Source: Chlorokybus atmophyticus (lineage: Eukaryota; Plantae; Mesostigma and Chlorokybus algae). Taken from it: a stretch of DNA of 64,000 bases. The stretch covers positions 184,158-248,157 of the forward strand of contig RHPI01001428.1 of NCBI GenBank assembly GCA_009103225.1, written 5' to 3'. The position numbers were made by a program, and so were the translations under genes. The notes below the pieces were generated by a model, which was not told the DNA's origin, ran no database searches, and saw only the letters and a list, made by a program, of their open reading frames with translations. The first letter of the stretch is position 1; each line of letters begins with the position of its first letter. Positions 7,015 to 62,383 of this stretch are shown piece by piece.

Positions 7015-8694
7015 CTACGGTATTAACCAACCCTCTTGCCCCTGCCCTCTGGACTCTACTTTCCGCTTGGCGTGGTTTTCATCACCTTCAGTGCGCCCGC
7101 CAGCAGCCTTCTGCTTCCTGATGATCTCATGAGCGGTGTTGAACACGCCGCCCGTAGGCTTGTTGCAAGCCGCACACTTGCCAGATTTTGCGTTGTGCTT
7201 CAAGCAGAAGACAGAGAAGTGTAGTATAAGCGCCATGCATACATTGGAAACCTCCAACAACAGACACTGATTGCATTCAGAAAATATCTAGGTGACATAA
7301 GCAGCGGGCAACGATGAAATGTGAAACGCATGCAACTGATCGCGTTGAGCTGTCAATGCCCGTATAGTTACAGCACAGACACGCTTGACAATGGATACAA
7401 TGCGTTTCGCATACCTTTAGTGCGCAGTGCTCGCAGAAATAGTGCTTGCACTTGGTGACGACGGGGTCGGTAAACGGTTCTCTGCATATAAAGCACGCGA
7501 AGGGTATTCCATCCTCGTCCTCGTCGCTGTCAGGGTTAACTCTATAATCAATCTCTCCCTCAGCTTCCTCGCCTTGCATCCGTTTCTTGCGCGCCTTCTC
7601 TTTGTCATCCCACTCGCGGTCAAGCTGCCACCCCGACTTGTAGTCTCCGCGGTCGTGCATGAACTTGCACGCGTCCCCGAAGCCGCAGTACCCCGTCTCT
7701 TTGTAGTCTTTACATAGATCTGGTTGGTAGTCGAAGCGTGCGGATATGCGTATGTGCGTGGACGCGCGCAAAGGCCCGTGCGCCCCTCCAGCTTTCTCAC
7801 TTGCAATCGTATGCTCGCGTCTGAACCCCGCCTTGTAGTCCTTGTACGCGTTGAGACCCTTGTATGTCTTGTCGTCGGGGCCACCGTCTTCACCTTCTTC
7901 AGCGCTCTGCTTGAGGATCCGCTCTCTTATCGCACGCGCGTCCTTGTCGTGCTCAGTCTCAGTCTCAAGCGTGGCCGTGGCTTTGCTGTCGCCCGACACT
8001 TGCACGCGCCGGTCTGACGTGAATGTGAAGCGCTCATGCCTAGCACCATCATCATCAGCCTTCCTGCTCGCTTCCAGCCCTCTTTCGCCAACTTTCTTGG
8101 CTTTGCTCGCCCTGACAACTGCACTTCCTCCTCCCCCTCCACCCCCACTGCCGTCATCGCCGTCCTCAGCGTCCTCTTCGGTCAAAGTGCGCTTCCGCAC
8201 GTTGCTCTTCCCGCTTCGCCTCTTGAAAAAACTGCACACGCCTGGCAATTTGACACATGGACGCTCAGTTGAATGCAGCGCTGGCATGAGCAACGCTGCT
8301 GAATAAGGCAGACACACATGTCGACGAAACACGTAAGTCACTTGCGCACCCACTTAGAATGCAACCCAAGTTAATGAAAACACAAGCGCATAATTGCATA
8401 ACGACGCTGTGTAACAACATTGTGGGCTTGTTAAGCAACATGCAGTTGAACACCCAAAACCCACAGCGCTCGTGCTAGCAGCCCACTAAATTGTCACCAG
8501 GAGACTGCATGCGAGTCGCCGGCGCAAACAAGCAAGACATCTGCGCGTACACACAAGTTGTGGTTGTTGTCATCCCGACCCAGATTACCTGCTGCAAGAG
8601 CAGCAGTAGCCGCCTCCTCCTCCTCCGCTGCCGCTGGCACCTCCTCGCCGGCTGCGGAAGTGGAGGCCTGACGATCTTCACCGTCCTCCGCCAT
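7015..8694 (-). CDS. CWC24: CCCH zinc finger plus RING spliceosomal protein Cwc24/RNF113A, 3 exons
   Basis: Exon 1 is [13 protein letters not shown]..., joined to [18 protein letters not shown]. It contains [39 protein letters not shown] (CCCH) and the [34 protein letters not shown]|[20 protein letters not shown]. Confidence 0.95.
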
Positions 8695-8898: not shown

Positions 8899-9649
8899 AT
8901 CCCTGCACAGAGCCGCGGCTGCAAGCGGCGACAACGGCGGCGGCGGCGGCGGAAGAGGAGCGGAGGGAGAACATATAATTTGTTGGTGGTGGAAGAAGCA
9001 GGTGTTTCCTGGCATGGTGATGACGTGTTGTTTGTCAAATTGAGGCCTGCACTGGCTGAGGCAACGCTGGCTGCCGGTATGTCGGTGGCTCTGCGTTGCT
9101 GGTGAGCTTGTAACGAACTGTTGAGCGGGAAGCTCTCTTGGGCTTATACGGACGGTGGGGAGGGTCTCCTCGCTTTGTATCAAGAAGTCATTACCGAAGG
9201 TAAGGTGTTGCTTCCGGTGCAAGCTAATTGTATTCAGTACCATGTTAGCATTCAGCATCGTGTCAATAAAAGCATGTCATTCCGTTTGTTTGCACGCTAG
9301 TATTCTCATGAGAAAGAAACATTGCACAATGCTTTTGTAACAACTTCACATTCAGTATTGGGCATGCACACAACTTCCGAGGTTGTGGTTGCAGCTCGGC
9401 AGACACCTCGGTTGCTTAGCAACTGTCAGTCGTTGGCTTCATTTCTCGTATAGAATTCATGAGCATTCATACACAATCTGTGCTCCTCTCCTTCTTTTCT
9501 TCATTTTTACTCTTTCAGTACCTGTTACTTTATCTGTTACCTACAGCTGTTCGCAGTTCGTTGTTGTTTGTGTGTCGTGTTATATGTGTCACATTCAAAC
9601 TGCTGATTGCCACTCTGCAGACTATCATCAGCACTACAAGCACACAACC

Positions 9650-12600
9650 ATGGCGGAGTTAGCAAAGTTGCAGCAGTTGGCTTTGGTCTCCAAGGTGTGC
9701 ACTGAGCTGGAGACACATCTTGGCATGGGCGACAAAACGCTTGCAGAGTTTGTCATTGACCTTGCGAAGGAAAAGGATACGCCCGTGTCATTCTCAAAGA
9801 CACTCGCCAGTCAGGGTGCCGAGCTCCCGTTGTCCCTCGCCACAACACTCCTCACCATCATCCAGCGCATGCGGCCGTCCGACTCCACAAAGCCTAAGTC
9901 TGAAGCTCCCAAGCCTGCTTCAGCATACCCTGGCCTCGCCGTGCCAGATGACCGCGAGCGCGTCAAGGCACTGCTTGATATTGATGCTGAAGTGGCTAAG
10001 ATGACCAATGGCAGAGGCAACGGACACTCTGCTGACAAGCGCGACAGCCGCGACAGGTCTGCAAGAGATGATGATCGTAGGGGAGGAGCGGACAAGTCTG
10101 ACCGGGACAGAGGCAGGCGAAGAGGTGATCACAACGGTGCAGATTATGATAAGGGGAGCAGCAGGGATCGCGACAGAGATAGAGGGCGCCGAAGGAGTGT
10201 TAGCCCGGAGCCAAGGTCGCACAACAGAGGCGGCAGCGGCAGTCCCGGGCCTGCCACGCGTATGCCGGATGAGCCTGAGCTGTATGCTGTATACAAGGGC
10301 CGCGTGACGTCCGTACAGGACTTTGGGTGCTTCGTGCAACTTGAAGGGTTCAGGGAGAAGCGCGAAGGCCTCGTGCATGCGTCTCAGATGAGCAATAAAC
10401 GCATCGCCAACGCCAAGGACGTGGTGTCCAGGGGGCAGAGCGTCTGGGTGAAAGTCATGGCACGTGCTGGCTCCAAATTGAGCCTCTCCATGCGGGATGT
10501 TGACCAGGAAACCGGCAGAGATCTGACTCCAATTGCACGACCGCCGGCCGGTGAAGAGTTTCGCTCAAACCCCCGGGCAGGTGCTGATGGTATGGCCGCA
10601 CCTTTCCGTGGCCTGTCTGGTGTTCCGATTGTTCATGACGATGATGACGACCGCGCAAGGAGACCTTTCAAGAGGTTGTCGTCACCGGAGAAGTGGGAAG
10701 CCAAGCAGCTAATTGCATCTGGCGTGCTGGACGTGAGGGAGTATCCCATGTATGATGAAGAAGGGCAGGGTATGCTGAATGTTGAGGAAGACGTGGAGGA
10801 CGACCTGGAGGTTGAGATTAACGATGAGGAGCCTCCCTTCTTGAAAGGGCAGACAAGCCAGAGCATTGATGTGTCGCCAATCAAGATTGTCAAGAACCCA
10901 GATGGGTCTCTGCAGCGTTCGGCCATGACTCAGTCGGCACTGTCAAAGGAACGGCGGGAGCTTCGTGATCAACAGCAGCGCACCATGCTGGACTCAATAC
11001 CAAAGGATCTGAACAGGCCATGGGAAGACCCTTTGCCCGAGTCTGGTGAGCGGCATCTGGCTCAGGAGCTGCGTGGCATTGGTATGAGCGCATACGAGCT
11101 GCCTGAGTGGAAGAAGGATGCATTTGGCAAGGCGCCCACCTTTGGTATTCGTAGCAACATGGGCATACGCGAGCAGAGGCAGAGCCTGCCCATATTCAAG
11201 CTGCGCGATCAATTGGTGCAAGCCGTGCATGACAACCAAGTGCTGGTTGTCATTGGTGAGACAGGGTCAGGAAAGACGACACAGATGACACAATACCTTG
11301 CAGAGGCCGGGTACACAACCAGGGGCAAGATTGGTTGCACTCAGCCCCGACGAGTGGCTGCAATGTCTGTGGCCAAGCGAGTGGCTGAAGAGTTTGGCTG
11401 CAGGCTAGGTGAAGAAGTGGGGTACGCTATTCGTTTCGAGGACTGCACAAGCCCTGAGACTGTCATCAAGTACATGACAGACGGCATGCTTCTGCGAGAG
11501 TGTCTGCTCGATGATCAGCTCAGCCAGTACAGTGTCATTATCCTTGATGAAGCTCACGAGCGCACCATCAACACGGATGTCATGTTCGGGTTGCTGAAGG
11601 ACGTGGTGAAGAATCGCAAGGAGCTCAAACTCATCGTCACATCTGCTACCCTTGATGCCGAGAAGTTTGCATCGTACTTCTTCAACTGCCCTATCTTCAC
11701 AATCCCTGGCCGCACTTTCCCTGTGGAGATATTGTACACAAAGCAACCCGAGAGTGATTACATGGACGCGGCGCTCATCACGGTGATGCAGATACATCTC
11801 ACGGAACCTGAGGGAGACGTGCTGCTCTTCTTGACTGGTCAGGAAGAGATTGACACTGCTTGTCAGATCCTATACGAGCGCATGAAGCAGTTGGGGCCCA
11901 ACGTGCCAGAGCTACACATTCTACCAGTGTACTCATCGCTGCCGAGTGAGATGCAAACCCGCATTTTCGATCCCGCTCCTGCTGGCTCTCGCAAGTGCGT
12001 CATCGCCACCAACATTGCAGAAGCATCCTTGACGATTGACGGCATTTACTATGTGGTGGACCCTGGCTTTGCCAAGCAGAAGGTCTTCAACCCCAAGTCG
12101 GGGATGGACGCTCTCGTGGTCACTCCCATCTCCCAAGCATCCGCCAGGCAACGTGCTGGGCGCGCAGGGCGAACAGGGCCTGGCAAGTGCTACAGACTCT
12201 ACACTGAGAGCGCCTACAAGAATGAAATGTTGCCTACATCTGTGCCTGAAATTCAGCGCACCAGTCTTGGAATGACTGTGCTGACGCTGAAGGCTCTGGG
12301 CATCAACGACTTGCTGAACTTTGACTTCATGGATCCCCCGCCTCCTCAAACTCTCATTCTTGCGCTGGAGCAGCTGTACAACCTGGGCGCGCTGGATGAA
12401 GAAGGCTTGCTCACAAGGCTCGGGCGCAAGATGGCAGAGTTTCCTTTGGAGCCGCCCATGTCGAAGATGCTGATTGCAAGTGTCGATCTAGGATGCAGCG
12501 AGGAGATATTGACCGTTGTGGCGATGCTTTCAGCGCAGAACGTGTTCTATCGACCCCGTGAGAAGCAGGCGCAGGCAGATCAGAAGAAAGCCAAGTTCTT

Positions 12601-13150
12601 CCAGCCTGAGGGCGACCACCTCACGCTGCTAACGGTGTATGAGTCCTGGAAGGCGAACAAGTTCTCTAACCCTTGGTGTTTTGAGAACTTTATCCAGGCG
12701 CGGTCTCTGAGGCGGGCGCAGGACGTGCGCAAGCAGCTCATGACCATCATGGACCGGTACAAGCTGGACATCGTGAGCGCGGGCAAGAACTTCAACAAGA
12801 TCCGTCGCGCCATCTGCAGCGGGTTTTTCTTCCACGCCGCGCGTAAGGACCCGCAGGAGGGTTACAAGACCCTCGTTGAGGGCCAGCAGGTGTACATCCA
12901 TCCCTCCAGCGCCCTGTTCCAGGCCCAACCCGACTGGGTGATCTACTTTGAACTCGTGCTCACCACCAAGGAGTACATGCGGGAGGTCTGCGCCATTGAC
13001 CCCAAGTGGCTCGTCGAGTTGGCTCCCAGGTTCTTCAAGCTGGCGGACCCCACCAAGCTCAGCAAGCGCAAGCGCCAGGAGCGTATCGAGCCGCTGTACG
13101 ATCGCTATGCTGAGCCCAACTCCTGGCGGCTCAGCAAGCGCCGAGGTTAA
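9650..13150 (+). CDS. PRP22: DEAH-box pre-mRNA splicing helicase Prp22/DHX8 (S1 domain plus helicase), intronless CDS of 1166 aa
   Basis: One uninterrupted frame from ATG 9650 ([17 protein letters not shown]). It contains an RS-like region, an S1 domain ([18 protein letters not shown]), [29 protein letters not shown] and a C-terminal [16 protein letters not shown]. Confidence 0.98.
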
Positions 13151-46246: not shown

Positions 46247-46966
46247 AGGCAAAAATGTTTACATTAGCAAGGCTTCACGGTCGCACTTTTGTTGTATTCA
46301 GCAATTGTACCCGGGTTCTGTGCGCTTGTGTGTGTGTTGGTTGGAAAGCTGCGCACAGTACGCCAGGTAAGGAGATCCAAGCATGCAGACTTATATGTGG
46401 CAAGCTGGTAGATGCCGGGCATCGCTGTTTGCGGCAGCAGTTCATCTGTTCATGTGCAGAATAGTGATGCTCCGGAGAATCTGAGAACAGTGTAATCAGT
46501 GACTGCTTGTTACTACTTGCGACTAACACAGTGATGGCGTAGAAAACAAATTCTTTGCATTGGTGTGCCATCATCCGTAATGGCGCTTATGTCATGCAAG
46601 AATGCGTGACGATGGCCTCGACAGATCTGTGGCGACAGTGTTACATTGCATGTCTCAATTTCTGTGCACATGCATGTGCTATGCTCGTAATTCTTGTCAA
46701 TATGGCCACATTGCGTCTTTTGTACACATGTGCTCATTTTAGCTCACCATCTCTTGTGCACCCTGCGGCTATGCACTTTGTGATATGACACATACAACAC
46801 AGTCGCAACTTGGTGAATCGTTGTGGGCGAGGGCACATCCTTGATCAAGGTTCATCTACAATGATTGTGCACAAGATAGGAATTCGGCCATATGCACACA
46901 CAGGAGACACACAGAGAGGGATAAGGTGCAGCAAGCTAAATCATTAGTGCAACACAGCAGCAGTCA

Positions 46967-47033
46967 GCAATTGTGGCAATTGCATGCATGTGCTTGCAAG
47001 TGCATAGTACATGCATGCAATTGCCACAATTGC
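46967..47033. repeat. Perfect inverted repeat (25-bp arms, 17-nt loop) between the convergent RPS16 and LptF/G 3' ends
   Basis: GCAATTGTGGCAATTGCATGCATGT ... ACATGCATGCAATTGCCACAATTGC. Confidence 0.9.
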
Positions 47034-47237
47034 ATGCATGTATTGTAATTGCATGCCATAAGTGCATAGTACATACTGCATGATGCTGAACAGCATCGCG
47101 CAACTACCAGCCATGAATCACAACTGCGCCACTTTTCAGACATCTATGCGTGCCTCTTGCTATAAGCGCAATCAATGTTACAGCTACACAAAGCTGACCG
47201 TGCTCGATTATGGCTTTATACGCCAGCACCTTCTGCA

Positions 47238-50200
47238 TCACCGGCGCAGCAAAAACAGCAGAACCATGCAGCCGCAACCATTGGGCAGCCAGGCTGCAAT
47301 TGCTGGAGATACTGCGCCAAGCTGTGCACAAACAGCACTGTTACAGGACTTTTCGCCTCTAAGCAAGGACTATGCTTGAGCACATACCTGGCCCAAGACA
47401 GACCCTGCGACAGACGCCGCGTAGTACGCAAACATGATGGCCAGGGCTACAGCGACGCCCGCCTGCAGGTTGACATGGCCTCTACTGTCAGCATATGATA
47501 ATATGTGCGCTTGGTAGCGACCTTTCATTGTACCTTGTGGAAGTGTGGCGGCAGCACCACGCTGAGGCTTGCTCCCAATGCGCCAAACACTGCACACGCA
47601 AAGGGCAGTGCCACTCGCTGATGGTACTTGACCTTGCAACTCAATAGCAAGATCAGCACTGCATGCACTATCACATGGGCTTGATCGAGGCAACGTGAAG
47701 TCCTCTCGGCATTGTTCTGAACTCACCCATATTCGGCGCGCTTGCTTCAAGTTATGGCTGGCTGAATGCAGGTTGGCCAACTGTTTTACCTGCAGACACA
47801 GGACCCATTGGCAGTTGCAGTCGAGAAATCTGTCTCGCTTACAACTGACACTCTTCCATCAGCAGACGTACAACGAAACGTGCATACCAGCTTACCTCTT
47901 GCAGAGTCAAGCTGTCAAACTCTGCTTTGCTGCGTGTAGCAAGGTCCAAGGGTATGCGTCCCACGCTGGAGACAGCTGCGCATGCACAAGGAATCACCTG
48001 TTTAATCCTCCGCACACATGGGTACGTAGTAACATCCAATATGCACTCACCCAAGGTGTCAAACGGTGTCAATGCTCTCAGCGCAACAGACTGGTCCGCA
48101 CCACGTGCCGCGAGCTCATACACGCAGCCACTCTGGAACATCCAGTGACTGCTTGCTTCGCTCCATTGTGCTGAGGATGCCATTACTATGCTGTGAGGCC
48201 GCATGATCTCAGTCAAGTCTGCAGAGCAACAGACTATTCATTCCCACAATGCTTGATCACTCAAGCGCAATGGTATGGTAGTAGACTGCAATTGTATTGT
48301 CTCCCTCAACATCCCCAGCGACTGTGAACATGCATACGGTCAGTAACTGTAAGGTTACCTGCTATGTTGGGGTGCTTCGGTGCACTCATGACGCCTCTGT
48401 TACGACTCGCAGTTGGAGGCACTTGTGGCGATTGCGCACTTGACTCCTGGCGTATTATACATTGGTGAGCTGCATGTTCCGTCACTCTCACCACCAGTGT
48501 CCAGGCAGCCTATCCATGCTAGTGACCATCACCATGTACAGGTCGCTCAACTTCGCACACATCGGTGAGTGCAACTATGTGGAACAGGTGGCAGAAAGAC
48601 ACGCAGCAACAGGGGATACTCGATGCACGTTGAAGAGTGCATTAGGTATCCCGAGATTGATGGTACTTCGATGTTCGTTTGGTGGGCACCCTGACGGCAA
48701 CCACAGCCAGCTTGCTGACATGACTCACACGGTTTACACCCAACTTGCAAATGGTGGCTGCCTACCATCTCCACCAGTGCCACATCCAGCATGTTTTGCC
48801 CGTCAAACCCAGCGGCGTAGAACATGTTGCGCAAACCTTTGCCGCCCTCCCTGCGCATCAATTGCACTCAAATTTGAACCAGCTGGCAGGTCGCTGTTGC
48901 TGTTCGATTTGCACCCGCGAGCAAATGGCTAGACTGAAATTGGAAGGTACCTATATTGCAGGTAGAGGACTGGATCTGGCATGACAACCTATGAACAAAG
49001 CCAGAAAGACATGATACCAATGCTGCAGCCGTAAACACATCACCGTAACCATTACATTCCAACCTGCCTGATGATGCACGCCTACTGTTGTCATTGCCTC
49101 CAATGACTGGCTTGCGCGTGGCGCCAGTACCTGTCACGATTGCGATATTATGCTAGGCATTGGTATCTACATCGAGTTGACTGCTAGCATAAGTACAGCA
49201 AGCGTCTTGCCTCTCCAAAAAGGAAGTGCGCAGAGGTTGCAAGTAAGAAGATGAATGCAGCGGGAAGAACTATGCGACGTGGGCTGACGCCGCTGGTCTG
49301 CATGGCTGTTGTGCATAGCAAGTTGTCAACAAGTGCAACAACCATTTCCACCAGGATCTGCACAGCTGCAATACTAACGCCACAGCAACCCCATGCACAA
49401 CATAGCCTGTGCAGTTGTTCAGGCAGCCGCTGCATGCGGCACGGAGCACATATGTGACTCACCAAGCAGTTCATTATTAGTGCTGAGCCGCCCAAAAGCC
49501 AGCAACGGCGCCAGCAAGGACGCCATTGGTAGTGCGAGCGCCATATAGTGCTGCAGGTGTCCATGAGGATGAGTTGTTTGTTGACTTGCAAGACAAGTCA
49601 ACTACAAACCAATGGTCTGTACCGGCGTGCGCAAAGCAACGGCTGTGGCAGCGGCAAGAAGCCATTGCCACTGGTTGGTTGCGCGTGCCCCGAGCTTAAG
49701 GACATCAGCGGCACTGCCTGTGCACAAGGCATGACGTCAAGCCTGCTAATGCACAAGCCTGGCTCAACACATGTGCACAAGCAACCAACCTATTGACAAG
49801 GCGATCCCAGTGAATGCAGCGACTCCCAGTAGAAGCGGCCCAATCAGCTCACGACAGATATACCAATCAAGCACGGTCGGCCTCTGCATGCAAACAAAAC
49901 CGTCTTTTCGGAACTGTGTGCCCAAGCGATTGTGAATGGCATAAGTCTTGATGGCAAGAGTGCGGGACAGCGAAGAATGAGTCATATAAGATCAGCTTAC
50001 GGGCAGAGCAAGCCTAGAGTGAGCCCGCACTTGGCCAGCGGAGACGCAGGATGGTATACATGTGCGCCCGGTACGAAATGTTGATATTGTAAAGCGTCCA
50101 ACTAGCCAAACTGAAGAGCCTGAAGGTTTGTCATGTTACGAAAGATTTGAATGAAGAAAAGCTTGCTTCGCGTAGGCATGCAGCAAGCCACGTTCAGCCA

Positions 50201-50863
50201 CGGAGCTAGTACTGCTACTCGTTCAGGCATGACAGGGGGAGGGGTACTACCATGGCACGACACTGTGAAGCATAACTGTTTAAGATGGTTCATGCATACA
50301 CAACACTGTTGTGCAATGCCAATCAACTTCGTGCTGGTGAAGGAGTTGGCAGAACACAGCAAGGCTTAAATGCAACATCCAGAGCGGCACAGCCAGCATA
50401 TAGCTTCACTGCATCATGCATACAGTTCACTAAATGCCAGTGTTCACTCAGCGATTTATAAGTGTTACAGTGAAACTAATCCATGCATAACGAAAGCGTC
50501 AGCATGACAAACACAGTGAAGACTAGCACATGGGTAAGTTTAGTAGGAGTGAGTTGCTGACCGATCAGCAACGACTGCGTTTCATGCGGACACATGGTGC
50601 ACGCTGTTTGTCAGTGTTGGGCCTGCTGCTGGATATGCGCATTACTGAACTGCAAGCCTAGCTGCAATGCACGTGCCTGCTGAGCTGGTGTGGCTGCTGC
50701 GGTGGGCCGGCAGTTGGCGCAGAGTCCGGCGCGCTGACAAGCTGCCGCAACAGCGTGAGGACGCTTGCGATCGCACCAGGAGCGTCGGACCCGAAGACAA
50801 TGCGACAGAAGACGCAGCGGTGGTGGCCGCTGCCGCCAACAGCACCCCGGCCGACGGCGGCAT
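47238..50863 (-). CDS. lptF/lptG-like: LptF/LptG (YjgP/YjgQ) family permease, cyanobacterial type, intron-rich; conserved part 47238-49883, 5' transit-peptide exon tentative
   Basis: Exons splice to RPTVLDWYICRELIGPLLLGVAAFTGIALSI|GSAADVLKLG...ALRTP|HYMALALPMASLLAPLLAFGRLSTNNELL|AMQTSGVSPRRIVLP...; LRNMFYAAGFDGQNM; IVMASSAQWSEASSHWMFQSG; VKYHQRVALPFACAVFGALGASL; AVALAIMFAYYAASVAGSVLGQ|LGAVSPAIAAWLPNGCG. These are family hallmarks. A Ser/Ala/Arg-rich, acid-free frame from ATG 50863 may be the transit peptide. Confidence 0.85.
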
Positions 50864-51183
50864 GAACGCCGCCACCACGCGCGCAATGCACGAAGTCACT
50901 GACGCAGCCAAATTGCAAATGCTGCTGGCGGAGGCACAGCTTTGGCAAAAGCGTATGCGTTGGAAGCTTGGGTTGGCTTTGCTGAGCCTGTTTTATAATA
51001 AGGTCACTCGCGGCTTGACAGTATAGGTGGTGTTGAGCATTAGGCGCTAACATTGAGACCTGCCTTAGGGCACTGCTTGCGCAACCTATCCCGCTTGACT
51101 CGCAACATGCGTACTACTATGTCGGCTGACATGGTCGGCCAGCCCCAATCAATCAGGCTGTTTGTATGTGTGCAGGCTTGTGT

Positions 51184-51585: not shown

Positions 51586-53260
51586 CTACAACTTGAAAGA
51601 CGCAACAAGCTGCAGAGAAGAGGATCAGTATGACATTGTGGCCGCAGAACACGCACCTTTGGTGAAAACAAACCTTAGCAAACAGTGGGCTGTACTTTTC
51701 CTTGTCCTCCTCTTTATACTGCGCATGACTTCTGGTGAGATAGATGCACAAGCCATGCACATGTTAAAGTGCTTGAGTTCTTTGTCTGTTAAGTCAGTCT
51801 GTTCAGTTCACAAACCTGCCCCGTGACAGTGTACAAACGGTTGTAACGGCCGTTGAATCCTATGGTCACAGCGGACTGAAAGTGCCGGGAATACTTGCCA
51901 GGCTGCGCAACTGTGTACTCGATATAATATATCCCTGTCGGCCAACTTGCATTGGTTGATGTCCCAGGCAGAGAACGACATAACAATTCGCTGCAAAGGA
52001 CCATTACCGCCAGATTGGAAGGCATCAACTAACTTTGCGGCCTGCTCCGATTTGTTTCGCCAACTGCGGTCCAGTCCACCTACCTGTCAAGACCGGAGCC
52101 GTCACGACACATGCCAATGCGGCCGTATCGTACCAAGAGTAGCTCAGCTGTCGGAACACGCAGAACCAGTAGTCACACAAGATTTGTGCTCACCAGTGCA
52201 GAGCCAAAGCCATACGCTGTGCCAAAGCTGCCCATGTTTTGGAAGTCTGCGCCGACCCCAGTGACAATGATGTTTACTGCAGCCGTGAGCAAATTCAGCT
52301 GACTGAAATTTCAACCGTCCAGTGCGTTGAATACCAAGAAACATGCAGCCGACACAATCACTGGAACCATCAAAACAATGGCCACCTACACAGCCCAGAC
52401 AACTTACTATTGGTGTCCATGTCACCCGGGGGGTAAAACGCCAGCACCCGCCGTTGACCTGAAGCAAAACCCTGCCCCTGCTCCCAATCTGTACACAAAA
52501 GTAAGCAATGTTACGTCCGCATGCGTGAGAAGCTAGACGCAAACCCTGTAGAGCAAAGCGTTCAGTGAAAGGCTCACAATAGTTTGCAAATTGAGAACAC
52601 ATGCAGCTGTCTGTCTGTCAATGCCAGCGTCTGCAAATATTTCCAGAACAAAGCACTTGCAATGACCACAACATGCCGTCAACAGTCGTGCTATTGGTTG
52701 CACGTTTGGCCAAGTGTATGTCATGCAACCATGCATCATCCTGAGCCAACGTACCTGCCGGCACCAGCAACGAAAACTTGTCCGACTCGTCTACGTACTC
52801 TTTCAGTGTTGCGTCTGTCCCACACGGACAGCATGTCACCACATACATGGAAACAAGAAACCAACAATCGTGACATGGGCTACCTGCAACAGCTGCTCGA
52901 GCAGGTAGAGCACCCCCAGCTGTCTCTGCGACAGCTGCCAGAATGGCAGCCTGCGACAAAAACTGTCTCCTACTAAAAGCTGCTTCGCTCAAATCTTTAA
53001 TTTGACTGTGTCATAAGATACAGACAGTCATTCAACGAGGTCCAAAACACAAGAGCTCATGTGCTGCATGGCCACGGTCACCACCTTTCCGCATGCAGCC
53101 CACCCGAGGGCGCCTGCGGCCTCGGGCACTTCTGTGCTCCGGCCGGCACTCCTCTGACACTACGCTCGTGCTTCAACCGCAAGCCTGATAAGCTTGGCCT
53201 GCCCAGGCATGCCCCCACAGACGCCCCGACGCTGAGCGCCGCTGCCGCAGTGGACGCCAT
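51586..53260 (-). CDS. PPD3: PsbP domain-containing protein 3-like (thylakoid lumen)
   Basis: Bipartite targeting sequence: MASTAAAALSVGASVG..., twin-Arg-like SRRQFL and ARAA cleavage. Then KEYVDESDKFSLLVP, YYIEYTVAQPGKYSRHFQSAVTIGFNGRYNRLYTVTGQ (characteristic of PPD3) and LVASFKL*. Confidence 0.85.
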
Positions 53261-56191: not shown

Positions 56192-57383
56192 TCATTCAAC
56201 TACCATAGGTTTCTTCTTCCTCTTCTTGTCCTGAATGGTGGGCATTGGTTCGGCAGCGGGTGAAGTGAGCGGGTTGCCATCCTGTGGCAGCAACACCGGT
56301 GCAGAGGCAGCTGGAGCGGCCGCAATGCTGGTATCATCAGCACCCTTCTTCTTCCTCTTTTTCTTCTTGCCAAAATCTTCCCCCGCACTCGACGGCGCAT
56401 TTACATCATCCTGCGCAGCTGTGGTATCATCGGGGATGCCTGTGTCATGTGCCAGTGGGTCCTCTGCAATGCCCAGATCGTCCGCAAGCTCCTCCTCCCC
56501 AAGCACCTCGGCCGCCTGCTGCACGGGCTCAGCGATGGGTACGCTCTGGTCTCGGTTGCGCCACAGCTGACTGATCTGCTTCATCACTTCCGGCATGGCC
56601 ATCTCTGGATGAGACCTGCGGTACGACGGCAGCTCCTTCCTCACAAAATTGTTGTACTCTGTCGGCAGCCGGCTCGGCCGCGGCTTCTTCTCCACCCCGT
56701 CCTCTCCCGCCTTGCCCTTCTTCTTGCCCTTCTTCCCTCCCGCAGCCGGCCCAGCACCCGCATGCAGCTCACCATCTGCGTCCTCCCCAGCCTTCCGCTT
56801 CCTCCCCGCAGAGGCATCAGCTGCAGAGTTCAACGATACACATGCAAAGGCAGCGTCATGAAGCTGTCAATTCCAAGCGAATACTTCTAGTTGCTAGCTG
56901 TGGCAAACGCTTCAACACTAAATGCTGAGTAGCAAGTGGGTGGCATGCAGGCATGTTTGCTGTGCAATAGGTGGAATGCAATGCTAAGCTAGGCAGCAGC
57001 AGGCAAGGACATGAACACTTCTCACCGAGTTGAGAGCCCAGCGCGCTGCATGTGTTCTGCAGCCAGCGGAGCCCTGAGAGGGGTAAATTGAGGAAACAAA
57101 CAGGGCCGCATGTCAAACAGCAGGAGTAAAGTGGGCAGCAACAAGCATGCAAAATGCACAAATATGCGATACTAGGCATACACGCATAGTCATGACAGCA
57201 GCAACACAAACGCACGCACATACCCACATGCATACAACACACACACAGCCGCACACCTTCCTCATTAGCCGGCGTGGCCGCTTCACCCGGAATGAGCAGC
57301 TCCAGCTGCTGCCCTATCCTCTGGAAGGCAGCCGACAGCTCGTTCGCTGCTATGCGCCCCATCAGCGCCCATGTCGCCTCCAT
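56192..57383 (-). CDS. HMG-box protein with a YABBY-type box and Lys-rich NLS-like tracts, 2 exons
   Basis: Exon 1 MEATWALMGR...ANEE joins in phase 1 to ADASAGRKRK. The box reads RLPTEYNNFVRKELPSYRRSHPEMAMPEVMKQISQLWRN. Confidence 0.72.
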
Positions 57384-60645: not shown

Positions 60646-62383
60646 ATGGCGGCGGCCGGGGCGCCGCCGCCTCCTTCATCAGGGCCGTGGTGGTTGACAG
60701 CGTCAGAGTTCCGTCCGCTGCCGCCTATTCTCCGTACGCAGGGGCTGCGAGCAAGGAGAAGGCTGCAGCAGCGGTGGTCATCGTCGTCAAGGGGCGGGAA
60801 GGTGGGGGCGTCAGCGGCAGCCGGGGCAGGGGCGAGCAGCAGCAGCAGTGTCGTCGCAGAAAGTAGCACCAGCAGTGCCGCGGCATTGCTGTGGAAGCGC
60901 ATCGTGCAGCCGCTGCGGAATTTCGGGTTTGGGCGGAGGACCGTTTGGGAGGGTGGTGTGGGCTTGTTCCTGGCAGCAGGCGTAGCTGTTAGTATCATTG
61001 TAGCTTCATGGGTCAAAGGCAGCAAAGTCCTTTCCCGCAACAGGGCGCATCCTTCTTACCAGGTTTGCACATGCACTGCGTTGGACATGCAATGCCTGAT
61101 GAATGACAATGCTGTAGCTAATGCTGCGGGCTTTTTTGCATTATTCACTTCGTTTCCAGCAGTAATCTTGTCTGCTGTTCGTCATTGCCACCGTTGTGTT
61201 GTTCAGAATATGCTGCTGCATGTTTGTCAACTTACAAACATGCAGCAGCACATTCTGAACAACACATATGGCTTGCATGGTTGCCTGCATGCAAGCCAGA
61301 TTATTACATCTGTCAACGTACATTGGTTGTCGGCTTACAATGTGGCTTGCCAACTGACGTTAATTGCTAACTTACATGAGCTATTGACTCACATTGTGGC
61401 TTGCATGCAGGCCATCATTGAGTTTGCTAATGCGTGTGGCATCACTGTGGGGACACCCGTCCGAGTGCGCGGTGTTGATGTTGGTGCAGTGGTCGGGGTT
61501 CGGCCCAGCCTGGATCGCATTGATGTGCATGTGGAGATAGGCGACTCCGCTGTTGTCATTCCTCGAGGCTCTGAAGTTGTTGTCAACCAGTCGGGGCTGA
61601 TTGCGGAGACGCTTATTGATATTACACCTTGCACGCTCCCTAAGGCAGTTGACAAAATTGCGGACCCGCTCGATCCTGCTTGCAAGGAAGAGGGCGTGAT
61701 TGTTTGTGATCGCGAGCGCATACGGGGAGAGCAGGGCGTCAGTCTAGACGAGTTGGTTAGCATCTGCACCAAGTTGGCCCATCAGATTGATCGCAACGGC
61801 CTAGACAACGTGTTCAAAGCAGCTCAAACAGCCAGCGAAGCCATTGAAAGCGCACGGCCTCTGCTAGTCCAAGCGGAGGCTGTTGCTGCAGAGGTATGCT
61901 GGTTTGTGGGATCTGGTGTTGTTACACTTGTTTACACCATAGGGAATGATATGTGTACCCGCTGATTGATAATATGTTAGGTTAAGGAATGCACCAACAT
62001 GTTAGCTAACTATATTCCATGTTCAGGTGGCTCCCTTGTTACGAGAGCTGCGCAATGGCGAGTTGTTTACTCGACTGGAGGCCCTCACAGAGGTTGCAAC
62101 AAATGCAGCAAGGGATATTCAGCGGCTGAACAAGGCAGTGCTTACCGACGACAACGCCGAACGTCTCCGCGAGTCTGTCACAACACTGACCAAGACACTG
62201 AAGCATATCGAGGTACGCAGCTACTCTTGCTTGTGTGGCTTCAGGTTCTAATGATGGTGTTAACATTTGTGTGTCTTGTATCAGAGCATTAGCAAGGACA
62301 TGAGCGGTGTGACAGGTGATCCAAAAACCAATCGTCATCTGCGCCAGCTCATACAATCGCTCAGCCGTATGGTGGCGGATTGA
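60646..62383 (+). CDS. TGD2: TGD2 (MlaD/MCE-domain substrate-binding subunit of the plastid lipid ABC transporter)
   Basis: Transit-peptide-like N-terminus. PLRNFGFGRRTVWEGGVGLFLAAG (transmembrane). MCE region ACGITVGTPVRVRGVDVG, VVNQSGLIAETLIDITP, CKEEGVIVCDRERIRGEQGVSLDELV. C-terminus LRQLIQSLSRMV. Confidence 0.95.
61195..61266. repeat. Near-perfect inverted repeat (33-bp arms, one mismatch, 6-nt loop) in TGD2 intron 1
   Basis: TGTGTTGTTCAGAATATGCTGCTGCATGTTTGT-CAACTT-ACAAACATGCAGCAGCACATTCTGAACAACACA. Confidence 0.93.

Follow-up and report, generated by a model that had tools for sequence, protein, structure and literature searches.

In Escherichia coli, lipopolysaccharide is extracted from the inner membrane by LptB2FG, in which the permeases LptF (b4261) and LptG (b4262) form a heterodimer. 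Lipid transport of bacterial type likewise occurs in the plastid envelope of plants, where the TGD system combines the Mla-derived proteins TGD1–3 with the LptD-family proteins TGD4 and LPTD1. In Arabidopsis, these two LptD orthologues reside in the outer envelope of the plastid, and land plants have been described with only such LptD-family relics plus the TGD1–3 system (PMC12096540). The permease TGD1 is of the MlaE type, and the plant papers that we found do not describe an inner-envelope Lpt component. An Lpt route would naturally finish at TGD4 and LPTD1 in the outer envelope (PMC12096540). On the cyanobacterial side, the Lpt route of Synechocystis has been described as poorly defined and without a recognisable LptA/C (2020 review, PMC7133116), and cyanobacteria carry only the first four lpx genes and make a simple lipid A (PMC3087551). 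Plants also have lpx genes, and lipid-A-reactive staining has been reported in green algae and in pea chloroplasts (PMC3087551). Here, we describe a gene of the LptF/LptG (YjgP/YjgQ; PF03739) family in a 64,000-nucleotide stretch of the Chlorokybus atmophyticus genome (contig RHPI01001428.1, assembly GCA_009103225.1; hereafter the window, to which all positions refer). The gene, on the minus strand from 47238 to about 49985, is genuine and intact, belongs to the nuclear genome and extends this family by a new member from a eukaryote; MlaE-type permeases differ in fold and form another family. An initial annotation, made from the letters of the window alone, had named no characterized LptF or LptG in green plants; in the full-text literature library searched, we likewise found no paper describing either protein in plastids, plants or algae.

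Translation of the minus-strand frames between 47000 and 51100 yielded short open stretches containing strings typical of the family (PTVLDWYICRELIGPLLLG, LPMASLLAPLLAFGRLSTNNELL, AMQTSGVSPRRIVLPAAF, HQRVALPFACAVFGALG and SPAIAAWLPN). Joined at AG/GT sites, these stretches give 13–14 exons, all in frame and none with a stop or frameshift, and the reading frame closes with a TGA at 47238–47240 (Table 1). The introns measure 66–157 nucleotides, those around exon j excepted, and follow the GT-AG rule save for one GC-AG intron after exon d (donor at 49210, GAG/gcaaga, the slash marking a splice boundary here and below), near which there is no in-phase GT donor. The junction that it creates between exons d and e, FGE/VLAP, is collinear with FN[DE]..VAP of the cyanobacterial proteins and with GEWVAP of E. 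coli. The initial annotation had spoken of about ten GT-AG exons; the gene is indeed spliced, with a higher exon count and one intron of the GC-AG type. Between exons g and l (48766–48218), alternative splice solutions exist. Variant B (398 amino acids) includes exon j and uses a strong acceptor, ctctgcag, at 48218, as does the public model, whereas variant C (365 amino acids) skips exon j and joins exon g straight to 48207, which gives the best collinearity with bacterial proteins at the price of a weak GAG acceptor. Exon k (48261–48321) of a first, 15-exon model was dropped, as it would need a 37-nucleotide intron and is absent from all homologues; possible exons in 48740–48500, which showed no homology, were dropped as well.

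Family membership is carried by the profile searches and by the layout of the protein. Of ten stop-free pieces submitted to Pfam, five matched PF03739 in collinear order (profile positions 1–25, 54–81, 82–114, 268–295 and 325–353), with a rough sum of 88 bits. P0001, a truncated public protein from the same gene that is described below, reached 43.2 bits through its C-terminus against a cutoff of 27.9, and its database record carries a precomputed PF03739.20 match. No MlaE-type permease family was among the Pfam matches of the exon pieces and P0001, all of which were to PF03739. Hydropathy peaks in the 398-residue model lie at residues 13–31, 65–83, 104–122, 322–340, 347–365 and 378–396, a layout of three transmembrane (TM) helices, a soluble domain of about 200 residues and three further TM helices, and in the alignment the soluble part corresponds to the jellyroll of the proteins from cyanobacteria and E. 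coli. The PF03739 search proposed in the initial annotation was thus positive on the exon pieces and on P0001, the complete YjgP/YjgQ topology that it read from the exons is borne out, and the motifs that it quoted are in place (GRLSTNNELL and AMQTSGVS on the two sides of an intron; AIAAWLPN near the C-terminus).

The gene looks constrained because it has kept both the glutamate of the coupling helix and most of the residues that do not vary among its relatives. The glutamate, in RLSTNNELLAMQ, shares an alignment column with E88 of E. coli LptG, E84 of E. coli LptF and all nine other bacterial rows; in E. coli, this residue contacts LptB. Across 48 columns that are invariant in seven cyanobacterial orthologues, Chlorokybus has the same residue at 35, compared with an overall identity of approximately 31%. 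Short of proof, such a pattern would be expected if selection still maintained the ancestral mechanism. In the assignment to LptF or LptG (NCBIfam TIGR04407 and TIGR04408), no model reached its cutoff: the cyanobacterial orthologues scored 176–179 bits with the LptG model (cutoff 240) and 151–159 bits with the LptF model (cutoff 230), and the Chlorokybus pieces scored 14–25 bits. Because both equivalog models match below cutoff, the clade cannot be called F or G, and the Chlorokybus protein would be filed at the family level only, slightly nearer to LptG.

To the E. coli permeases, which belong to the same Pfam family, the likeness is real but distant. The N-terminal 130 residues align (ELLAMQTSG with ELVVMQASG, GEVLAP with GEWVAP) and the coupling glutamate is common to both, whereas the overall similarity amounts to only about 20–29 bits. 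The basic residues of TM1 in E. coli (K34 of LptG, R33 of LptF) are not kept in Chlorokybus or in cyanobacteria, in a region where the alignment is uncertain. Furthermore, E. coli uses an F/G heterodimer, whereas one gene copy was seen in the 64-kb window of Chlorokybus.

Far closer relatives are found among cyanobacteria. A bacterial sample was drawn from a collection with a single genome for each species, in which a DNA pattern of the C-terminal motif P-x-[LIVMF]-A-A-W-L-P-N was sought. This returned at least 120 bacterial loci from many phyla, 86 of them with a full open reading frame (ORF) and the motif about 25 residues before the stop. Against these 86 ORFs, from about 17 phyla, a phmmer search with the first model ranked eight cyanobacterial proteins at the top: Microcystis (164 bits), Calothrix (157 bits), Gomphosphaeria (148 bits), two further cyanobacteria (L071, 141 bits; L013, 137.5 bits), Pleurocapsa (135 bits), Nostocaceae (131 bits) and Xenococcaceae (100 bits; handles of the named entries, in order, L032, L111, L102, L093, L065 and L057). 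An uncultured bacterium (L010) followed with 99 bits, all other phyla gave 20–83 bits, and E. coli LptG and LptF gave 29 and 20 bits, respectively. With variant C, the eight cyanobacterial proteins scored 112–180 bits and the rest of the 86 at most 110, whereas six LptF/LptG proteins of three alphaproteobacteria scored 11–40 bits, a range into which the gammaproteobacterial LptF and LptG fall as well. A single blastp high-scoring segment pair aligns residues 3–355 of variant C with residues 32–391 of the Microcystis protein at 31.8% identity (E 1e-60).

Phylogenetic analysis led to the same placement. Trees were computed under LG+C20+F+G4 with posterior mean site frequencies (PMSF), as a quick tree of 86 rows and a careful tree of 54 rows. 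The clade uniting Chlorokybus with the eight cyanobacteria received a Shimodaira–Hasegawa-like approximate likelihood ratio (SH-aLRT) support of 98 in the former and an ultrafast bootstrap (UFBoot) of 99 with an SH-aLRT of 99 in the latter. Within it, Chlorokybus branches as the sister of the sampled cyanobacteria instead of among them, in a sampling that is thin; an early-branching Synechococcus sequence (L072) falls outside the cyanobacterial clade and may be a paralogue. In approximately unbiased (AU) tests, a topology that joins Chlorokybus to one alphaproteobacterium could not be rejected (p = 0.15), a result that is uninformative because that long branch can move beside the cyanobacteria. 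Grouping with all Pseudomonadota, a set that does not form a clade anyway, was rejected. Since the similarity ranking and the tree agree, descent of the gene from cyanobacteria, as the initial annotation had proposed along with a phylogeny to check it, appears well supported, and an alphaproteobacterial (mitochondrial) descent appears unsupported.

The cyanobacterial orthologues also indicate the setting from which the gene would have come. The Microcystis protein scores 291 bits with PF03739, and matches LptG and LptF chains in solved structures of LptB2FG. Its gene directly follows one for LptB (TIGR04406, 321 bits against a cutoff of 240) and one that encodes an LptA/LptD_N domain. The order lptA/C-like, lptB, lptF/G recurs in Calothrix and in the uncultured cyanobacterium L013, and an lptB–lptF/G pair occurs in L010, an uncultured rumen bacterium and the next-closest relative (clusters at L032:2493-5100, L111:3-2814, L013:3959-7717 and L010:626-2618); four other cyanobacterial loci are without the lptB–lptF/G linkage. 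The clusters with an lptA/C-like gene suggest that at least some cyanobacteria possess LptA/C. Permeases of this group (Microcystis novacekii L032:3934-5100, Calothrix L111:3-1154, Gomphosphaeria L102:5101-6222) are collinear with the Chlorokybus protein from end to end at approximately 32% identity, and share with it the architecture of three TM helices, jellyroll and three TM helices, the SEL motif of the coupling helix and the C-terminal P.[LIVMF]AAWLPN. In contrast to the cyanobacterial genes, that of Chlorokybus is nuclear, has 12–13 introns and an N-terminal extension, and does not adjoin lptB or lptA/C; its protein differs by short deletions after TM3, a 6-residue insertion and possibly a 29-residue insertion in the jellyroll.

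Bacterial contamination is contradicted by the spliceosomal introns, by the eukaryotic flanking genes (a DEAH helicase, a CCCH/RING protein, Fcf1, an HMG-box protein and an MlaD/TGD2-like gene) and by a 99% match to a EukProt Chlorokybus protein, so that the initial annotation was right to regard the gene as integrated and intact. This match was the one real hit when exons l and m, translated together with the in-frame intron between them, were searched against 1.84 billion representative proteins: P0001 (203 amino acids, 99% identical), which is EukProt EP00898 Chlorokybus atmophyticus P004055 and also JGI Chlat1 4650 / Chrsp3S09026. P0001, at 47238–48988 on the minus strand, is truncated and mis-spliced, begins in exon f and is without exons a–e, n and o, and therefore lacks TM1–4. 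Automated surveys of that proteome would therefore under-count the PF03739 family in algae.

Searches for relatives in other eukaryotes had a narrow reach. The exon l and m search found no eukaryotic orthologue beyond P0001, a blank that is uninformative on other eukaryotes because this region is too poorly conserved for even the cyanobacterial homologues to be detected. A protein search with P0001 (targets of 112–355 amino acids) returned only P0001 itself, and no related loci were found when P0001 was scanned against genomes and metagenomes. A tblastn search of E. coli LptG against plasmids found no cyanobacteria, and among the matches listed for a profile built from a Pseudomonas veronii plasmid LptG together with exons c and d, Pseudomonas and enterobacterial LptG dominate. 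InterPro lists some eukaryotic members of the LptF/LptG family, so that the gene may not be unique to Chlorokybus.

Two candidates exist for the N-terminus, and both extensions look like organelle presequences in their composition. The first extends exon a upstream by 32 amino acids and is basic, rich in Ser/Thr and poor in acidic residues. Within it, a second ATG at 49889 (MQ-RPTVLD) stands at the position of the ancestral bacterial start, and a good acceptor (ttgtttgcatgcag/AGG) at 49884/49883 would turn the extension into intron. The second candidate lies farther upstream and has a possible phase-0 donor, GCA/gttcag, that would reach the acceptor at 49883 across a 769-nucleotide intron. An upstream frame resembling a transit peptide had already been pointed out in the initial annotation; its acid-poor composition holds, whereas it is only one of two candidate N-termini and has a lower coding score than the opposite strand. 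Antisense to the second candidate, a plus-strand ORF at 50667–51023 (or to 51026; 119 amino acids, with ATG and without a Pfam match) ends at a GT (..LSLFYNK/gt) and could be the first exon of a divergent neighbouring gene or a product of chance.

Table 1. Exons and candidate N-termini of the Chlorokybus LptF/LptG-family gene, and other genes of the window.
Feature	Position	Strand	Sequence	Content and support
Candidate N-terminus 2	50653..50863	-		ATG 50863; 70-71 codons rich in Ala/Ser/Arg/Thr, no Asp/Glu
Candidate N-terminus 1	49884..49985	-	MTHSSLSRTLAIKTYAIHNRLGTQFRKDGFVC	In-frame upstream extension of exon a; ATG 49985; codon score about neutral
Exon a (core)	49790..49883	-	RPTVLDWYICRELIGPLLLGVAAFTGIALSI(G)	LptF/G N-terminus and TM1; donor gttggt; PF03739 profile 1-25; aligns with cyanobacterial LDRYI start
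Exon b	49623..49717	-	(G)SAADVLKLGARATNQWQWLLAAATAVALRTP	Loop and start of TM2; collinear with cyanobacterial orthologues
Exon c	49463..49550	-	HYMALALPMASLLAPLLAFGRLSTNNELL	TM2 and coupling helix with conserved Glu; PF03739 profile 54-81, 23.6 bits; tblastn with cyanobacterial proteins
Exon d	49211..49305	-	(A)MQTSGVSPRRIVLPAAFIFLLATSAHFLFGE	TM3; GC donor GAG/gcaaga; PF03739 profile 82-114
Exon e	49086..49130	-	VLAPRASQSLEAMTT	Soluble domain begins; in-frame junction, alignment
Exon f	48951..48988	-	VVMPDPVLYLQY(R)	Public model P0001 begins within this exon
Exon g	48766..48850	-	(R)EGGKGLRNMFYAAGFDGQNMLDVALVEM	Jellyroll strands; tblastn with cyanobacterial proteins; in P0001
Exon j (optional)	48359..48446	-	ESSAQSPQVPPTASRNRGVMSAPKHPNIA	Low-complexity insertion, in no bacterial homologue; canonical sites ccag/.../gtaacc; used in public model
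Exon l	48051..48218	-	(D)LTEIMRPHSIVMASSAQWSEASSHWMFQSGCVYELAARGADQSVALRALTPFDTL	Start 48218 (variant B) or 48207 (variant C)
Exon m	47896..47975	-	(A)VSSVGRIPLDLATRSKAEFDSLTLQE	In-frame junction, tblastn, alignment
Exon n	47727..47789	-	VKQLANLHSASHNLKQARRIW	Not in public model; collinear with cyanobacterial ..LSG[ND]..KIRK..
Exon o	47534..47632	-	VKYHQRVALPFACAVFGALGASLSVVLPPHFHK	TM4; not in public model; PF03739 profile 268-295; tblastn 46-48% identity to cyanobacterial proteins
Exon p	47388..47462	-	AGVAVALAIMFAYYAASVAGSVLGQ	TM5; tblastn with cyanobacterial proteins
Exon q	47238..47321	-	LGAVSPAIAAWLPNGCGCMVLLFLLRR and stop	TM6, family C-terminal motif; PF03739 profile 325-353
CCCH zinc-finger and RING protein	7277-8353	-
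DEAH-box helicase with S1 domain	9383-13150	+		PRP22/DHX8-like; apparently intronless
Fcf1 exons	54.0-55.3 kb	+
HMG-box protein	56192-56833	-
MlaD/TGD2-like gene	60646-61965	+		439-aa ATG ORF, Ala/Ser/Arg-rich N-terminus; Pfam MlaD 56.5 bits, residues 258-328

Several features of the surroundings deserve mention in their own right. The MlaD/TGD2-like ORF, whose middle looks like a read-through intron, is a separate locus approximately 10 kb from the LptF/G gene, and the presence of two bacterial-type genes for envelope lipid transport within one 64-kb window may be a coincidence. At 52618–52992 on the minus strand, an ORF that begins with MSEAAFSRRQFLSQAAILAAVAETAGG carries a twin-arginine-like signal followed by ..YVDESDKFSLLVP..; this exon is without a Pfam match, is reminiscent of a thylakoid-lumen PsbP-family protein and would belong to the next same-strand gene upstream. 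Just 3' of the stop codon, at 46960–47060, repeated and inverted caattgc/gcaattg...catgcatg copies occur (for example gcaattgtggcaattgcatgcatgtgc and catgcatgcaattgccacaattgcatgcatg), which may act as a 3' element that folds into a hairpin or may just represent a simple repeat. Runs of N mark assembly gaps at approximately 28.9–29.8 kb and 34.9–35.1 kb, and their flanks are GA/CT-type low-complexity sequence that is open in six frames.

We propose that the gene passed by endosymbiotic gene transfer from the cyanobacterial ancestor of the plastid to the nucleus of the Chlorokybus lineage, where it would have remained functional. Its product would be an LptF/LptG-family permease, the transmembrane half of an LptB2FG-type ATP-binding cassette (ABC) extractor, and would be imported into the plastid inner envelope by means of an N-terminal presequence. 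There, its partners would be a second copy of itself or a paralogue, together with an LptB-like ATPase from a gene elsewhere, and ATP would drive the pull of an amphipathic glycolipid from the outer leaflet of the inner envelope. This substrate, perhaps a molecule akin to lipid A or perhaps a plastid glycolipid put to new use, would be passed through the jellyroll domain towards the outer envelope, the site of the LptD-family proteins TGD4 and LPTD1 in plants. As a whole explanation, an endosymbiont-derived nuclear gene for an inner-envelope Lpt-type glycolipid extractor is the one that we consider probable, with appreciable reserve. That the protein is a relic Lpt-type lipid transporter of the envelope is a reasonable inference from its ancestry and its conserved residues. 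A bolder extension, which we regard as tentative and rather doubtful, is that the Chlorokybus plastid has a complete Lpt route, with an LptB2(F/G)2 extractor, an LptC/A-like bridge and an LptD-family protein, and that this route was lost towards land plants, leaving TGD4 and LPTD1. If true, it would constitute a second bacterial lipid bridge beside TGD/Mla, by which a glycolipid, lipid-A-like or other, is exported to the outer envelope.

A number of observations weigh against the proposed inner-envelope extractor. The 64-kb window holds no LptB, no LptA/C and no second LptF/G. Being truncated, the public annotation gives the 5' half of the gene no support, and no orthologue was found in another eukaryote by searches that could see only proteins of at most 355 amino acids at about 45% identity or more. 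The Chlorokybus branch is long (1.5–1.7 substitutions per site) and the composition of the sequence deviates, and the bacterial sample, drawn by one C-terminal motif, under-represents lineages without that motif. Regarding the presequence, the second N-terminal candidate has a coding score of −21.5 compared with +9.9 for the overlapping plus-strand ORF, in a codon-usage score that is a weak judge of transit peptides because it was trained on a soluble helicase, and the short extension of the first candidate could equally be a mitochondrial presequence.

Three competing explanations were weighed. The absence of other Lpt components from the window would suit a gene that is cyanobacterial in origin but has outlived the Lpt pathway, its permease being re-used, for instance with another ABC ATPase or in the thylakoid or the inner envelope, for a different lipid or hydrophobic molecule and having left the trans-envelope bridge. 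The reduction of the land-plant inventory to TGD4/LPTD1 relics and TGD1–3 (PMC12096540), the fact that plants have not yielded canonical lipid A (PMC3087551), and the short deletions and the possible 29-residue low-complexity insertion in the jellyroll relative to cyanobacteria point in the same direction. Nevertheless, the coupling glutamate, the jellyroll strands, the C-terminal motif and the 35 invariant residues have been kept, as expected if the ancestral partners and mechanism persist, and we therefore judge such re-use to be unlikely, albeit a serious contender. The long branch, the odd composition, the blank among eukaryotes within the size limit given above and the fragmentary public model could also be read as signs of a decaying relic, or of a later, lineage-specific horizontal transfer from a cyanobacterium, with little or no present function. 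This is improbable for a gene whose 13–14 exons contain no stop or frameshift, whose splice sites are all usable and which retains invariant residues at a rate far exceeding its overall identity. Moreover, the presence of at least 13 spliceosomal introns favours a long stay in the nucleus, and Chlorokybus is sister to, rather than nested among, the cyanobacteria of our thin sample.

The place of action could also differ, the protein being mitochondrial or dual-targeted and serving the lipid-A-like pathway that plants reportedly operate with lpx genes from sources other than cyanobacteria. Some plant lpx genes are said to have come from elsewhere than cyanobacteria (PMC3087551), and the 32-residue extension (MTHSSLSRTLAIKTYAIHNRLGTQFRKDGFVC), short and basic, could form a presequence of the mitochondrial type. 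Green-algal transit peptides, for their part, are short and often resemble mitochondrial presequences, so that this extension does not discriminate between the two organelles. The Lpx enzymes of Arabidopsis are mitochondrial. Set against this, the ancestry of the gene is cyanobacterial (112–180 bits compared with 11–40 bits for alphaproteobacterial proteins, and a clade supported at 99/99), and genes transferred from the cyanobacterial endosymbiont mostly serve the plastid; mitochondrial or dual targeting consequently strikes us as very improbable, and import into the plastid inner envelope stays the preferred reading.

Plastids are thought to have shed the lipopolysaccharide layer of their cyanobacterial ancestor. 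To our knowledge, the only Lpt relics discussed in plants have been TGD4 and LPTD1, relatives of LptD that sit in the outer envelope and work in glycerolipid traffic. Chlorokybus is among the earliest-branching streptophyte algae, and its gene shows that, in at least one green lineage, the energy-using, inner-membrane half of an Lpt system outlasted its transfer to the nucleus. This hints that some plastids may still run a bacterial-style machine for glycolipid export. The gene thus offers a handle on the questions of whether chloroplast lipid-A-like molecules are real, how they would reach the outer envelope, and how plastid LptD-type proteins were originally fed.

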